A program made the position numbers and the translations under genes. Positions 15,479-55,410 of a stretch of DNA of 64,000 nt are shown piece by piece; position 1 is the stretch's first letter; each line of letters opens with the position of its first letter. This stretch comes from Oikopleura dioica. Lineage: Eukaryota > Animalia > Chordata. Below the pieces are notes generated by a model. That model saw only the letters and a program-made list of their open reading frames with translations, ran no database searches and was not told the origin of the DNA. The stretch spans positions 7,688,001 through 7,752,000 of the forward strand of contig OU015567.1 of NCBI GenBank assembly GCA_907165135.1. Direction: 5' to 3'.

Positions 15479-18400
15479 ATGAGGTCGAACACGAATGTGC
15501 TTGAAGGCATTATTCGAAGGAACGCTTACAGTAGCCAACGTAAGTTTCGCTTCTTTCAGATCCAGGGGAATTCTTTTTTATCTGTAGACGGTGTCTTTGT
15601 TGTCGCAAATGCAGAGCTTCCGGAGTTCCCTGTCATTTATGTGTCCGACAAATTCACCAATAAACTCGGCTACACAAGGGCCGATCTCATCGGCGAACCA
15701 ATAACGTTAGATTTTATGGGGAATAAAGACGTTACACAAATGCTCTCCCAGTTTTTGATCAATATCAGCCGCACCAGTGCTAAACTACTTCCTCAGGAAC
15801 GGTCTTATTACCCGTAAATTATGGTAAACTGATGATTTTCGGGACCTCCGAAAAGCTGGAAGACGGGCCGAGCTTCCAAACAGAAGGACTCCTGACGCGC
15901 AAAAACGGTATTCCTCGACTGTGTCGAATTCGCTTGTCTCCAGGTATAACGGGCAGAGCAAGATATAATTATAAAGTCATTATCGACATGCGTTTTCGAT
16001 TTTCTGCCCCACTCGCTCGCTCTCAATCTACTCAGACTTACAAAGCGTCGCTCTGCCCCTGCTAAGTTATAAATAATTTAAAGGTGACGTTCATCGTCAT
16101 TAATCTCTACGAAGTAAAGGACATGGAATTAAATTTATCACAAAAATGTTGCTTTATTGGTAAAAAATGATAAGTGCATAGAATTTATAGAAACAATTTC
16201 ACGGGCGCCTGCAAACTTTCCACGCGCAAATTCCACAGATCGTCAGAACAGAAAGATTGAATAGACCACTCCAGTAGTTTCTCTCTTCTTTGTCATCCTC
16301 CAAATCAATCACTCTTCTTTCAAGCTCCTGCATCCAATCGTTCATTTCGATTTGTTGCTTGAAGAGCTCTTCAAGTTGTTCTTCAACTTTTTCATCTTTG
16401 AATTGATAAAAATCGATTCGAAGTTTGAAAGATTCATATTATATTTTTATCCGCGCCTAAATATCTTGGAGTCATGATAGGATTTGGAGTGCTCGTCTGC
16501 TCGCGAAGCATTCTAGCACTAGGATCTGGGACGATTTCTTGCGGGCACGGCTGGGGCATTTCTTGGAAGCTGAGGTTGATGCCTTGCATCTGGTCCAAAA
16601 ACTCCTCCACAACGAGTGAATCGGCTCTAATGTTCCTTGCTGGAGCCTTCATGCTGTACTCGTCCGCATCCAAGAAGTCGTAACCTGATTCCCAGACCAT
16701 GCTTGCGCTCGTCAATCCAACGGGATGATCAAGTTCGGTTCCAGCGCCATTTTCATCGTCTTCGTAGGGAGCGATCATTCGTGGTGCATGCATTTCCAGA
16801 TCTGCGCTTGGATTCGGAACCTGATCATCCAGATCGACGTTTTCTCGGAGACTGAGAGAACGAGGAACTCGCATGTTCTTGTTGATGCTCTCGGAAAGCT
16901 CCTTTTCGATGGGAAGATCAGCCAAGCTGCCGTTAAATGAGTCCATTTTAAATTCTGAAGCGATTCAAACAAGTTCTCTTGAAAATCAAAAAAGACATCC
17001 TACCTCGATAAATGAAGGGGTGAAACTGAATATTTTTCGCTACGAGTAAATATGTCCAAATAAGTTCTAGAAACCTAACAAAATATATTGATTCCAATCA
17101 AAGATAAAGGCAAATAACGCCAGCACGCGTAAATTTCGACAATCTGTCTACCGAAAATCAAGGAAGAATACGATCGACCACACTGTAACAAGCATTTCAC
17201 ATATCGAAACAAACTCGACTTCAAATAATCATGATACGAATCAGAAATCGGAGAATGCAAAGTTAGATCAGCTAGAGGAACCGACGAGCCAATCTAGGAG
17301 ACTGTCTTCGACATCGCTGATTTCGCACAGATCTTTAATAGAATCGCCAAAAGCAGAAGGAAGAGTTGAAAAAAAATAGTAGATCAACTAATCAGAACTT
17401 TGATTAACTCTATCAAGGAGACCGGCTCACAATATCTCATTACGGTTCTTTCAAAACCTTGTGGGTCTGGTTGATTCTCCTGCTCACGATCTATTCCGCA
17501 CTGTTTGTTCCATATAATGTGGCATTCTCCGGGACGCACCATGTCGTGTCGCATAATGTTGTTTGGTTGCTGCTCGACAGCTGCGTTGATTTCATTTTCA
17601 TCGCCGATGTGTTCATTTGCTTCCTGACGACGATTGTGGCTGAGAATGGGGAGACGATCGACGACAGGAATATTATTCAGATGAATTATGTCTCCAGTTG
17701 GTATTGTTTGGATCTACTGAGTTGTCTTCCGCTTGATTTGCTGAACTTTATCACGACAATGGGGCAAGCTCAATCGGGCGATGGAGGAATAACTTCGTTA
17801 TTTACAACGCTAAAGATTGCTCGGCTATTGAGAGTATCTCGTGTAGCGAGAAAGCTCGATCAATTTGCTCATTACAGCTCTGTCATGCTTCTTTTACTTG
17901 TCTTGTCCTTCCTTCTGTCTGGCCATTGGCTCGCTTGTGTCTGGTATGCAATAGGTAAGAACAAAGTACAAATTACGGTGAACTATAATTTCCTGAAAGG
18001 CGTGACCGGAAGCTGCTCAGAAGGGATCGTCCAAAACTCCTCCTGGATCGTCAAGCTCGCAGACGACCTAGGCGAGCCCATCGTCTTCCGCAACGATTGC
18101 ACAGTTCTCGAGATCCCGCCGTCTTCCAAATGCTATGTCGCTTCTTTATATTTTGTCATGACTTCTTTAACTTCCGTCGGCTTCGGCAATATATCCGCTA
18201 ATACGAAAGAGGAGCAGATATTCTGCGTCTTTGTTTTGCTTTTTGGTGCTCTTGTTTATGCCACTATTTTTGGTAACATCACTACAATTATACAACAGCT
18301 ACATACCGATACGAACAGATATCATGATGCGATCAACTCAGTCTCGGAATTCAGGTAATTTTATTCGATTAAAATATTTTGAATGGAAATTATTTGATTT

Positions 18401-20464
18401 TAAGTCGGCAATTCCACGTTCCTCAAGAGCTGCGTGACCGAATTCGTGACCATATCGTATCATCTTGGACAATGAACAAGGGCATTGATGCTAGGAAAGT
18501 AATTGAATTCTGCCCTGAAGATCTCCGTGCAGGTAAGTTCATCGCACATCGAAATTTTATGACGTTGGTGTAAGATATCGCTGTCCATCTCCATCGGAAG
18601 GTTTTCAACGATCACAAGGCCTTTCGAGAAAGTTCCGATGCCTGCCTGAGAGCGTTGGCTACAGAAATCAAGGAAAAGAGATTTTGCCCAGGCGATATCA
18701 TCTATCACAAGGTTCCGATTTTTTCTGACTAGTATTAATGATTTCAAAGGGCGAAGCTGTTGATGAAGTTGTTTTCATAATGTCCGGGTGTCTTGAAATC
18801 CTGGAAGATGATGATGTCGTCATTGCGATTCTTTCAAATGGGGACGCTTTTGGAAATCAAGTGTGGAAGGTAACAATAAATTTCGTTCCAACTTTCGTCA
18901 AAAAAATTCGAAGGACAACGAAGCTGCTCGAGGAAGTCATTTTTACGTGCGTGTTCTTGCGCCTACTGATTTGCGCATTTTTAAATCGGACAGCTTGAAG
19001 AAAGTGCTTCAATTCTACCACCACTTCAAAGAGTCTTTCGATGCAAATATGGTGCTTAGTTTCAACTTGTGCAATCCGCGGACAAAGTCATGTAACGGGG
19101 AGCGCAAACTGAGTAGCTCAAGTACATGTTCAAAGAAAACACCTGTTGGCCGTCTCTCAAGGTGATTTGTACGCGCGAGAATATTTTATAGAAATTTTAA
19201 AGTCTTCCAAATATAACGCACAGAAAGTCACTCTTCTCGCCAGCAACCAAGAGGGCTACTATTGGAGGCTCGTTTCCAATAATTGATGTCGACTGTGCAA
19301 TACATGGTGGTATGCGGTCACCTGGGTTTTTAAACCCAGAGTCGCAAAATGCTCAGTTTGGGATTACCAGTCCCAGATCGTCCAATTCTTCAGTCTGGGA
19401 TTTTCAAAACCCAGACTCACCACTTTTGTGACCCTGGGTTTGCCGAACCCAGGTCACCGCATTTTATCAGTAAGTTGAACCTGGGTTTTTTGCTCGTACC
19501 AAAACAATTTCCACGTCGTCTAGAAAAAAAAAGATAAAATTTCTACCAATCCTGCTAAACACCTACTTTTAAGACAAAAACATTTTAGTTTTAAGTACTT
19601 TCTATGACTTGAGGTTAGTGTTAGGGGGCACTGTGCAAAATGACGGAACAGTCTTACCCGAGGGGGATAGGCTAGGGTTAGTTAGGGTTACCGAAGGTAA
19701 CCCTAAGTAACCATAGACTAGACCCCGGCATCTTAGGGCCTAAGGGGCGAAGCCCCGTGGCTAGGGGCACTTAGATTTAGTAATTTTCTGCTGCCGAATC
19801 TGTCTTTTTCTTATCCTCTGAAGCTTGTGAACCCTAGAAACTTGTTTGGTCAAGCAAAAAAAAACCCAGGCTCAACTTATTGATAAAACGCGGTAACCTG
19901 GGTTTGACAATCCCAGGCTCGCAGAAGTGGCGAGCCTGGGTTTTGAAAAACCCAGACTCAAGAATTTTGCCTCCTGGGACTAGTAATCCCAAACTGGGCA
20001 TTTTGCGACTCTGGGTTTAAAAACCCAGGTGACCGCCTACAACCGCAATACATCCAGCCAAAAATCGCGGAACTCCGAGTCCAATAGCAGCGTCAAAGCA
20101 GACTCAACTCAAGAATCTCATCGCTCAGGTTATCAAATCTTCAATTTGTTGCTAATCAAATTATTAGATGAAAGTCTTGACTGCAACAGCAGAGCATCTT
20201 CTTTCGAACTGGGATGAAACACCAGACTCAAAATCGACGCCAGAACCCTTCTGCCGAAAAGACTCACTTCTTGTCGAAGGAAAGTCGAGAATCATGTCTA
20301 GTTCTTCTTCCAGAAAGAGCATCATTAGCGACAATGATTATCTTCATCCAACATTGGAAGAGGTCGACGGTGAAACTTGCAGCGAACAAAGAAAATCGGA
20401 GAACAGAAAATCCAGAACTCTGTCTATCGAAGATGTGCTCTTTGTTGATGAGTCTGAGTCCTAA
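15479..20464 (+). CDS. eag: Ether-a-go-go (EAG, KCNH1/5-type) voltage-gated K+ channel, multi-exon
   Basis: PAS N-terminus (NVLEGIIRR...[18 protein letters not shown]); S1-S6 in 17459-18358; pore [18 protein letters not shown]; C-linker/CNBHD ([15 protein letters not shown]...[18 protein letters not shown]...SDACLRALA) matching the EAG rather than ERG/ELK pattern; last exon 20168-20464. Confidence 0.92.
16199..16946 (-). CDS. MFF: Mitochondrial fission factor (MFF)-like tail-anchored protein, 2 exons, nested antisense in an EAG intron
   Basis: N-terminal [16 protein letters not shown] and MHAPRMI resemble the MFF repeats EYTEGISQRMRVPEKL and MQVPERI. Manually translated exon 2: [65 protein letters not shown] (coiled coil + TM + basic tail). 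Joining needs a GC-AG (16396-16456) or GA-AG (16396-16465) intron. Confidence 0.7.
19306..20044. mobile_element. Non-autonomous DNA transposon (MITE/foldback), ~200-bp TIRs, 9-bp TSD GCAATACAT; MULE- or Merlin-like
   Basis: Ends GGTGGTATGCGGTCACCTGGG / CCCAGGTGACCGCCTACAACC; TSD at 19297-19305 and 20045-20053; TIRs contain CTGGG..CCCAG palindromic subrepeats. Confidence 0.92.
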
Positions 20465-21026
20465 TAAATAAATCACAGGAGACCTGTTATGCTAAACTTT
20501 AAGCTTTGTTTCGTAGGAAGTGAGATTAGTTTTGGATAAAATAAAGAGTGTTTATTATTGGTACAGAAACTCGAATAATTAGCTCTCTTCAGACGAACCG
20601 TTCATGTTAGACAAAAATACTGCCAGCAAAACGATAAATACAACTTTCTACTCTTTGTATCTTTAACTTTTCGCTCAAAAAAATTCAAGTGTGCTACCAA
20701 ATGGTTAATCTATCAAAGAATGCGAAAGAATTTCTTATCACTTTGAATTTCATTCATAAATTTCGGGGTTAATAAATAACTCCTTTAAATTTATTCTGTG
20801 GCCACTTTTATGGAAGGAACAAGAACTAATTGATAATCATCTACCATAATCAATAATCAAACGTAAGAACTTTAATAAATTACAATGAACCTCATAATAT
20901 TTTCACCAGACACATTCGCATTCCTCACTACCGTTACATTAATGCAGCGCCACCTGAGCTAGAAAAGTAGCCCCGCAATTGTTTCAAACTCATTCAGGGA
21001 AGAATAAATTTTTAAGAAATAAGAAA

Positions 21027-53337: not shown

Positions 53338-55410
53338 CTAACAAATAGGATGAGAGATGACGCGTTGTGAGCCGTACGCCGAGAGTAGAATTTTTCCATT
53401 ACTTTCCCAGTTTACTCCAGTGAGCAAATAATCGCCTATTAATTCGCTCTTTATGACAGAGCCGGATGAAGTGAATAGAAGGATTCGCCCATCTTCGCCC
53501 GTGGAAACGCATAATTGAGGGGAAACATTTGGATCAGCTTTTGAAACTATGCTCGTAACGCCGGCTGTATGGCCATTTATTCGAAATTTGACGGTGTCTT
53601 TTTCAAGTCCGATAATCGCACCATCCATCGTTCCGATCAGAAGCGTTTGAGGCGCTACACATACTGTTGTAGCGATCGTTTCCTGGAAAGTTCGTCGAGA
53701 CTGTTACAAAGTGGCTTGACTACCTGGAGTTTGAGACTGTATAAAAGCTGGTTGTTGACTTCAATATTCCAAACAGTTACCCAGCCAGTCTCATCGACAA
53801 CGGCAAGAGTTTTGCCATCGCAATCCATGGCCATGATCGAGCAGTCCTTCAAGAATTTATAATTGGATAATCAGTAATAATATACTAATTACTTTTTTAC
53901 TTGATGAGGAATCTAAAGTCACATCACTGGCAAAGCCCGAGCCAGTAATTTTCATAATTCTAATCCTCCCATCTTCATGTCCAAAGAAAACCCTCGAAAT
54001 GTCTTCATGACTTGTTGCTGCAGTAATCGGTGTCTTTGAATTCCACGTCGCAAAGTGGCAGTAGGACTTGTGACCGTACAGAAACACCTGAGAAGAAGTG
54101 ACGATAACGATGCGCTGCTTCGAAACTTTTCCGATTTTCAACGGGTTTTCCGTAAAGTTGATCTTTATTTTGCCGCTTTTCTCGTCGCCAGTGACGACTG
54201 CGTTTTTCGAACAAACTAGAGGGACGATTTTGCCGTTCTTCTCGACAGTGATTAGATTGTCATTAACAAGAGAAGTGGTACCACCAAGAGAGAGGGTGCT
54301 ACTCATTCTTAAGAAAATCACCTAATGGCTTCTGACTCAACCGGAATCTCACTTTTCAGCAACTGACCTGCGAAAATCCTGCAAGAAAAGAGACAAACGA
54401 AATTGGGCTCTCATAGATATCATTTATTAACAGTAATTTCCTAGAAGATGATTGAATGCGAGCTAGAAAGAGCAAAATTACATGTACCGTTGCACAGAGG
54501 CCGCACAGCCGGGCTTGCGCCCTATGCATAGGCTTACCGGACTAAATTTCGGCACATTTTTCTAGCTTAATTTGGGGGTCATGTAACATATATTTAGAAA
54601 GCCCATGTCCTGAGCTTTCATTTGGGCACAGAATAAAGGGGTCTGAGTCATGCCCCCAAGCAATTTATGGGACCGGAAGTCTCAATATAGGCACTAGAAG
54701 TCTTCAATCAAATTTTTCGATACGTTTAGGAACTCCTGAGCCTTTAGGAACGGCTGGAATAGGAAGCTCAGACTCTGAGCTTTCTGTAGAGCCCATAAAA
54801 TCTAGCTGCCCTTCGGTCTAGCGGCCTCTAGTGGTCAAAGAAGGTGAGAATATGGGTATTTTTCGACAGGAACCCGAAAGGAAATTGAAAAAACCTTCCG
54901 GTTCTACCGCGGTTCAATTACTAAAGACTCATATATTGTTTATAATTGTTTTATAAATATAACAAGTAAGTTAAGAAGTCGGAAATTCGACTCGAAACCA
55001 GAAGATTCTCGACTTAAGCACTTATAAAGTCAACTTCTAGGGCCACAAGAGGGCGCTAGAGCCGAGGGCAGCTAGATTTTATGGGCTTTACAGAAAGCTA
55101 AGAGTCTGAGCTTTCTATCCCAACCGCTCCTCAAGGCTCTTGAGCTCCTAAACACATCGAAAAATCGATTGAAGAGTTCAAGTGCCTATTTTGGAACTTC
55201 CGGTCACATAATTTGCCTTGGGGGCATGACCTTGACCCCTTGATATTGTGCCCAAATGAAAGCTCAGCTTCTGGGCATTCTAAAGCTGTATCATAAGACC
55301 CCCCAACTAAGCTAGAAAAATCGACAAAAATCAGTCCGGTAAGCCTACCTATGCACAGCCACCGCAACAACCATATTTTGAAGATAGTGAGGGGAAACAC
55401 AACTAATATT
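53338..55410 (-). CDS. WD40-repeat protein, possibly F-box/WD; 5' exon interrupted by a MITE
   Basis: WD-like segments FFGHEDGRIRIM, LAVVDETGWVTVWNI, GHTAGVTSI…CVSTGEDGRILLF in ORFs 53857-54321, 53655-53852 and 53338-53628. The 5' exon and F-box call (DPILVVFPLTIFKIWLLRWLCIGRKPGCAASVQRY) are tentative. Confidence 0.65.
54529..55347. mobile_element. Non-autonomous DNA transposon (819 bp), ~310-bp TIRs, 8-bp TSD CCTATGCA; hAT-like
   Basis: Termini TAGGCTTACCGGACT / AGTCCGGTAAGCCTA are perfect inverted repeats; TSD at 54521-54528 and 55348-55355; arms align over ~54529-54835 vs ~55040-55347. Confidence 0.95.

Follow-up and report, generated by a model that had tools for sequence, protein, structure and literature searches.

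Since the work of Denoeud et al. 2010, Oikopleura has figured among the organisms with introns that originated from transposon insertions (Table 1 of PMC3443670), and in Fritillaria borealis, a related larvacean, introns derived from miniature inverted-repeat transposable elements (MITEs) are predominant in the genome (Henriet et al. 2019, reviewed in PMC11282704). The same review describes the introners, both in Micromonas/Aureococcus (Huff, Zilberman & Roy 2016) and in other aquatic eukaryotes (Gozashti et al. 2022), as having a splice site borne by a terminal inverted repeat (TIR) together with a target-site duplication (TSD). The locus analyzed here is located in a stretch of 64,000 nucleotides from Oikopleura dioica (referred to as the window; assembly GCA_907165135.1, contig OU015567.1, positions 7,688,001 to 7,752,000 of the forward strand), in which a non-autonomous foldback element of 739 bp (19306-20044) lies within a C-terminal exon of an EAG potassium channel gene. 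A transposon was inserted into this formerly continuous exon on the Okinawan branch of the species, and the insertion has probably been neutralized as a predicted GT-AG intron of 748 nt.

The element is enclosed by a perfect 9-bp direct repeat (GCAATACAT), with the left copy at 19297-19305, encoding Ala-Ile-His, and the right copy at 20045-20053, inside the predicted intron. Both copies directly abut the two TIR arms of 186 nt each (19306-19491 and 19859-20044), which are 87% complementary; TIRs flanked by a TSD, the hallmark of a transposon-derived intron, are thus present. The arms are made of CCTGGG-loop-CCCAG mini-hairpins with a spacing of mostly about 37 nt, and each of them also forms an internal palindrome (19312-19462 in the left arm). 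Between the arms there is a non-coding core (19492-19858) with a 65-nt palindrome that includes TTAGGG-like motifs (19662-19726). As RNA, the element adopts a hairpin structure with about 200 bp and a minimum free energy of -393.7 kcal/mol (z = -21). The 24-nt terminus was found in the window at just the two ends of the element, with a chance expectation of 0.00. Scans of the element revealed neither an Rfam family above threshold nor a tRNA, and no protein relatives were found for its longest open reading frame (ORF).

Both the 9-11-bp TSD and the long TIRs with sub-terminal repeats of Foldback/Mutator-like elements were found at this locus. From the 9-bp TSD, the long sub-repeat TIRs and the non-coding foldback structure, we take the element to resemble Foldback or Mutator-like elements (MULE, Phantom), no terminal motif having been matched to a curated family. 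Merlin elements likewise produce TSDs of 8-9 bp. A MULE or Merlin assignment would be based on TSD length only, and the Foldback/Mutator-like affinity is a resemblance.

No further copy was found by similarity in the 64 kb of the window or among the 13 fetched loci, and the TIR pattern had no match in the contigs of the JGI metagenomes. In the DNA run X29, which corresponds to a sister taxon ('organism B'), three contigs meet the element precisely at 19306, each of them coming from another flank. Because these contigs join at the same nucleotide from different flanks, 19306 is the true terminus of a multi-copy family, and the run implies a few additional copies of it. The divergence between the two arms (13%) sets an upper age bound of about 0.065 substitutions per site, provided that the arms were identical at insertion. 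In the same run, the summed contig depth over the core (19571-19771) reached 6,000-54,000, compared with about 100 in the flanks and 180-890 in the arms, and this reflects either the alignment of telomere-like contigs or a core repeat far more abundant than the arms. Another MITE is located at 54521-55355 of the window, and since it shares no detectable similarity with the 19306-20044 element, at least two unrelated MITE families are present in genes of these 64 kb.

The host gene (15479-20464, plus strand) was assigned to the EAG / KCNH1/5-like voltage-gated K+ channels on the basis of Pfam matches, ascidian relatives and identity to a public gene model. The Pfam families PAS_9, Ion_trans, Ion_trans_2 and cNMP_binding were matched, and the N-terminal PAS domain, the voltage-gated pore module with six transmembrane segments and the C-terminal cyclic-nucleotide-binding homology domain of the EAG channels are present. 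The nearest named relatives are KCNH1/KCNH5 of Ciona, and the best named matches include KCNH1/5 proteins of Ciona, Clavelina and Styela. With the Ciona protein as query, the search of relatives yielded KCNH proteins of vertebrates and ascidians only, and none from Oikopleura. A look-up of protein clusters led to CAG5111835.1 (Oidioi.mRNA.OKI2018_I69.chr2.g6106.t1, Oikopleura dioica), whose nine exons all map to the window (17885 to 20461) with zero mismatches; the window is therefore an exact match to the Okinawan O. dioica assembly over the EAG gene. The other introns of this gene are tiny (39-62 nt), in agreement with the median intron of 49 nt in O. dioica (PMC8008620).

The ancestral state of the exon was deduced from metagenome and Logan contigs reached through members of the protein cluster. 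The contigs of a divergent O. dioica lineage, with 72-79% nucleotide identity, conserved gene order and, for the terminal exon, a synonymous divergence (dS) of about 1.7, include six (L005, L006, L007, L008, L010 and L011) in which the orthologous exon is uninterrupted, and the positions equivalent to 19295 and 20062 of the window are only about 21 nt apart in them. Since these six contigs hold a continuous exon, the insertion, and any intron at this site, is derived on the Okinawan branch, which split from the other O. dioica lineages roughly 25 Mya (million years ago; PMC11067885). In contig L005 the sequence reads ...IIDVDC-INQHHLR-NRGTPSP..., after which come an intron of 44 nt and the terminal exon. 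The preliminary description of this DNA had proposed to look for empty sites encoding AIHPAK; the uninterrupted exon was indeed found, with the residues INQHHLR instead of AIHPAK at this patch.

Closer relatives gave a less direct picture. The X29 contigs over the left arm and the core show a single-copy-like depth (about 116, versus about 100 in the flanks) and are 4.6-7% diverged, a value comparable to the divergence of X29 in the untranslated region. A flank contig of this run fits the window up to 19305 and then runs for 14 letters, and the bin 20040-20106 is a hole. These data suggest that X29 shares the insertion, which for this reason would not be brand-new. A metagenome contig of a close relative (L001, 95% identity) starts at position 20052 of the window, 2 nt inside the right TSD; the foldback structure could have broken the assembly there, and this start is suggestive of the insertion but ambiguous on a filled or an empty site. 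The contig L013 starts 34 nt upstream of the terminal exon, look-ups with the ORF of the terminal exon gave short contigs only, and a look-up with the 100-aa upstream ORF gave no record. In the contigs of a more distant Oikopleura-like lineage (L002-L004) no recognizable tail exon was found.

When the element and one TSD copy are excised, ...IIDVDCAIH is joined in a single frame to the 25 residues that follow downstream. The annotated intron of CAG5111835.1 (19310-20057, plus strand) produces this result in a slightly shifted form: one exon ends at 19309 and the next starts at 20058, and the protein reads AIHGAKNRG. The 748 nt of this predicted intron are equal to the element (739) plus one TSD (9), with a rightward offset of 4 nt from the insertion, and the frame is kept because the length removed is exactly the length that the insertion added. 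The GGTG of the element takes the place of the host CCAG, changing CAT CCA GCC to CAT GGT GCC (Pro to Gly). The donor at 19310 (GTG|GTATGC), contained in the left arm, has the best consensus among the nearby GT dinucleotides (G at -1, GTA and G at +5). The acceptor CATCCAG| ending at 20057 is the first AG past the element and consists of host sequence, 4 nt beyond the right TSD. In an enumeration of donors and acceptors, 19310/20057 was the best canonical pair. The predicted exon-exon junction is ATACATGGTG|CCAAAAATCG. The reverse complement of the right arm starts with GGTT|GTAGGC, and GT is thus found at the same position in both termini, making a donor available in either orientation of the element; no acceptor was found usably close to the tip at either end, and the right arm contains no AG in its last 16 nt.

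The upstream half of the interrupted exon (19203-19309) is an exact mapping of residues 353-388 of protein P0280, with its last 4 nt (GGTG, 19306-19309) derived from the element, and the predicted intron corresponds to the gap between residues 388 and 389. In L005 the stretch of this half that begins with SLPNIT is conserved, with an H/N and an I/V difference. The downstream half (20058-20128) reads (G)CC AAA ... CAG and is followed by an ordinary GT-AG intron of 39 nt (20129-20167), whose position is kept in L005 with 44 nt, and by the terminal coding exon (20168-20464; 98 codons plus the stop), which is conserved across lineages. Most of what the preliminary description had read from the letters was recovered in this analysis, namely the foldback element with a 9-bp TSD in an EAG exon, the continuous exon left after its removal, the GTATGC donor and the CATCCAG| acceptor with their H-G-A-K product, and the donor at 20129 with the terminal exon at 20168, both as in CAG5111835.1. 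Its upstream acceptor, placed before 19224, was 21 nt too far downstream. In CAG5111835.1 the acceptor is 19202|19203, which adds the seven codons SLPNITH, and it is supported because these codons are conserved in another lineage (SLPNIT(H/N) in L005, with three synonymous changes and one replacement).

A probable course of events is the following. On the Okinawan branch, a foldback transposon entered the exon of the EAG tail, duplicating the 9-bp target GCAATACAT. The GT located 4 nt inside the element terminus would then have served as donor, and the first AG downstream, already present in the host sequence at 20057, as acceptor. The pre-mRNA would be rescued by splicing out the 748 nt, with the replacement of CCA (Pro) by GGT (Gly) as the sole scar. 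The hairpin formed by the arms could set the donor beside the acceptor, and may in this way assist the removal of 748 nt by a spliceosome accustomed to introns of about 49 nt. That splicing takes place, the precise junction it uses and a contribution of the hairpin are what we infer from the genomic data.

Strong purifying selection acts on the coding sequence that follows the element. Comparison of the 123 downstream codons with L001 revealed 11 synonymous changes, a single non-synonymous change and a TAA to TGA replacement of the stop (dS 0.147; non-synonymous divergence, dN, 0.0035; their ratio, omega, 0.024). The terminal exon also gave an omega of 0.07 against L005, and five of the six listed differences in the terminal exon of X29 are synonymous. 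The frame and the downstream coding sequence are therefore preserved and constrained. The insertion site is located past the last domain for which homology is detectable, in a variable C-terminal tail exon. The idea that the element is inserted just upstream of a recognizable tetramerizing coiled coil was dropped, since neither Ciona KCNH1 nor any PDB chain showed homology to the tail.

Several observations weigh against the proposed neutralization by splicing. None of the reads from three species-labeled RNA runs of 2026 (one single-cell and two oligo-dT) was placed on 18700-20700, the exons included, these runs being probably from another cryptic lineage, and the protein collections searched contained neither an assembled transcript nor a full-length protein of the EAG gene. 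The gene models of OKI2018_I69 were produced by AUGUSTUS with RNA-seq hints (PMC8008620). CAG5111835.1 looks fragmentary: its first residue is an internal Met belonging to the pore module, so that it leaves out the exons for PAS and S1-S4 at 15479-17884, and it removes, as a probable GC-AG intron, an open in-frame stretch of 45 nt (17957-18001, 15 residues). Because it is an AUGUSTUS prediction, truncated at the N-terminus and with one doubtful in-frame intron, this model may be partly ab initio and hence weak evidence for a real junction; its intron 19310/20057 is consistent with splicing and is not a proof of it. Frame compatibility by itself is also weak evidence and statistically unremarkable, since, with non-canonical G[ACG] donors allowed, the surroundings of the element offer 69 donor/acceptor pairs that are in frame and free of stops. 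The acceptor at 20057 has just a modest pyrimidine tract, and the donor at 19310 is enclosed in a strong stem of long-range as well as local pairing (19312-19328 with 19446-19462), which could hinder U1 binding. Finally, part or all of the signal of purifying selection may predate the insertion, because L001 and X29 are candidate carriers.

One alternative is that the element is retained or poorly removed, the annotated intron being an ab initio convenience and the insertion a young, possibly segregating one with loss or reduction of function, so that the channel would be truncated after about 44 codons derived from the element or the mRNA would be targeted for decay. The empty RNA runs and the weakness of the public model in other parts of the gene agree with this, as does the position of the site beyond the last detectable domain, in a tail without homology to Ciona KCNH or PDB chains; moreover, the insertion could be recent, because the TSD is still perfect and the other lineage lacks the insertion. 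Reading through into the element reaches a stop after 44 codons, a frameshift into a stop results if the exon is skipped or 19309 is joined to 20168 (from both the enumeration and direct reading), and every alternative to in-frame removal forfeits a conserved tail. Loss of this tail should have a cost because it is conserved both across lineages whose synonymous divergence is saturated (omega 0.07) and in comparison with a close relative (omega 0.02). The insertion is also probably shared by X29, and DNA runs of at least two samples contain 83-92% of the sequence words of the region, versus 59% obtainable from the flanks alone. Retention is regarded as unlikely. That the insertion is an assembly artefact, for example a wrongly joined repeat absent from the EAG gene of the animal, is hardly credible. 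Foldback repeats are certainly hard to assemble, and L001 breaks exactly at the right edge of the element, but the perfect TSD abuts both termini, independent DNA runs contain most of the stretch with words of the element included, and in X29 the flank contig stops matching the window after 19305, the base that immediately precedes the element.

A further possibility is that the element is spliced out at an in-frame junction other than the annotated one. The preliminary description had noted that a GT at 19307 would delete the Pro alone, and splicing of this donor (ATG|GTGGTA) to 20057 does give AIH-AKNR through the junction ATACATG|CCAAAAATCG; other candidates are 19310 with acceptors at 20087 or 20090, or pairs with non-canonical donors, and about 11% of the OKI2018_I69 introns are non-canonical (PMC8008620). 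Several splice outcomes would be tolerated, because the affected patch varies between lineages (AIHPAK versus INQHHLR). Against this, 19310 is closer to the donor consensus than 19307, 20057 is the first AG past the element, and the public model selected precisely this pair, so that another junction is considered quite unlikely. The neutralization of the transposon as an intron, as put forward in the preliminary description, is accordingly retained in part: the insertion into a continuous exon (six empty orthologous sites), the identical intron of the public model and the constraint downstream stand, and removal from the RNA keeps the status of a prediction.

Other features of the EAG gene also vary between lineages. 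The intron at 16130-17088 is about 960 nt long in the window and about 56 nt in the lineage of L005/L007-L012. It includes two ORFs on the minus strand (16434-16946, 170 aa, and 16199-16345, 48 aa with a hydrophobic C-terminus), neither of them with a Pfam match, and may contain a nested gene found only in the Okinawan lineage. The metagenome contigs L002, L003 and L004 (for example, 4773-6850 of L002) match 17459-18358 of the window in the pore, with about 98% amino-acid and about 79% nucleotide identity. The single 900-nt exon of the window is split in these contigs into several exons separated by introns of hundreds of nt, which is a strong example of intron turnover within the EAG gene.

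Oikopleura dioica shows extreme intron turnover, and the origin of most of its lineage-specific introns is no longer visible. The EAG locus retains traces of its origin, with the hallmarks of the transposon, the ancestral exon in sister lineages and a precisely predictable Pro-to-Gly scar, in a conserved gene with a constrained tail. If the junction were confirmed in RNA, it would provide a test case for the neutralization of exonic transposon insertions in a compact chordate genome, for whether long TIR hairpins help or hinder splicing, and for the frequency of imprecise intronization. Whether the locus in addition captures, in datable form, the imprecise birth of an intron in an animal, with GT in both termini, no acceptor of its own, the first host AG borrowed and a hairpin juxtaposing the splice sites, is judged to be evenly balanced.

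The closest described cases, in the sources cited at the beginning, are the transposon-derived introns of larvaceans. They share with this locus the host clade, a non-autonomous element with TIRs and TSD, a lineage-specific position in an otherwise continuous exon and the proposed neutralization by the spliceosome. The EAG element differs from them in its 739 bp, its 186-nt arms, the 4-nt shift of the splice sites and the Pro-to-Gly scar, and its splicing is predicted; in addition, the EAG intron would be a canonical GT-AG intron, unlike the AG-AC or AG-AT type of Fritillaria. The introners, as described there, are also DNA transposons with TIRs and a TSD, in which one splice site lies in the element end and the length removed is the element plus one TSD. 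However, their second splice site comes from the TSD and they are present as hundreds of near-identical intron copies, whereas the EAG element uses a host acceptor beyond the TSD and was seen once in the 64 kb, X29 pointing to a few more copies. The element and its TSD do not supply both splice sites for a scarless excision as in introners, the AG at 20056-20057 being host sequence 3-4 nt past the TSD; because this acceptor is pre-existing host sequence, the excision would be imprecise at the protein level. A stable structure that draws the intron ends together is also described for the introner-like elements of fungi and the non-conventional introns of euglenids (PMC3609843, PMC11282704). Those cases correspond to short elements or non-spliceosomal introns, and the EAG hairpin is formed by a pair of 186-nt TIRs with a putative role in splicing. 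The EAG case thus extends the existing picture of transposon-derived introns without changing it, and is most likely a clean, not unprecedented, example of intron gain in O. dioica.

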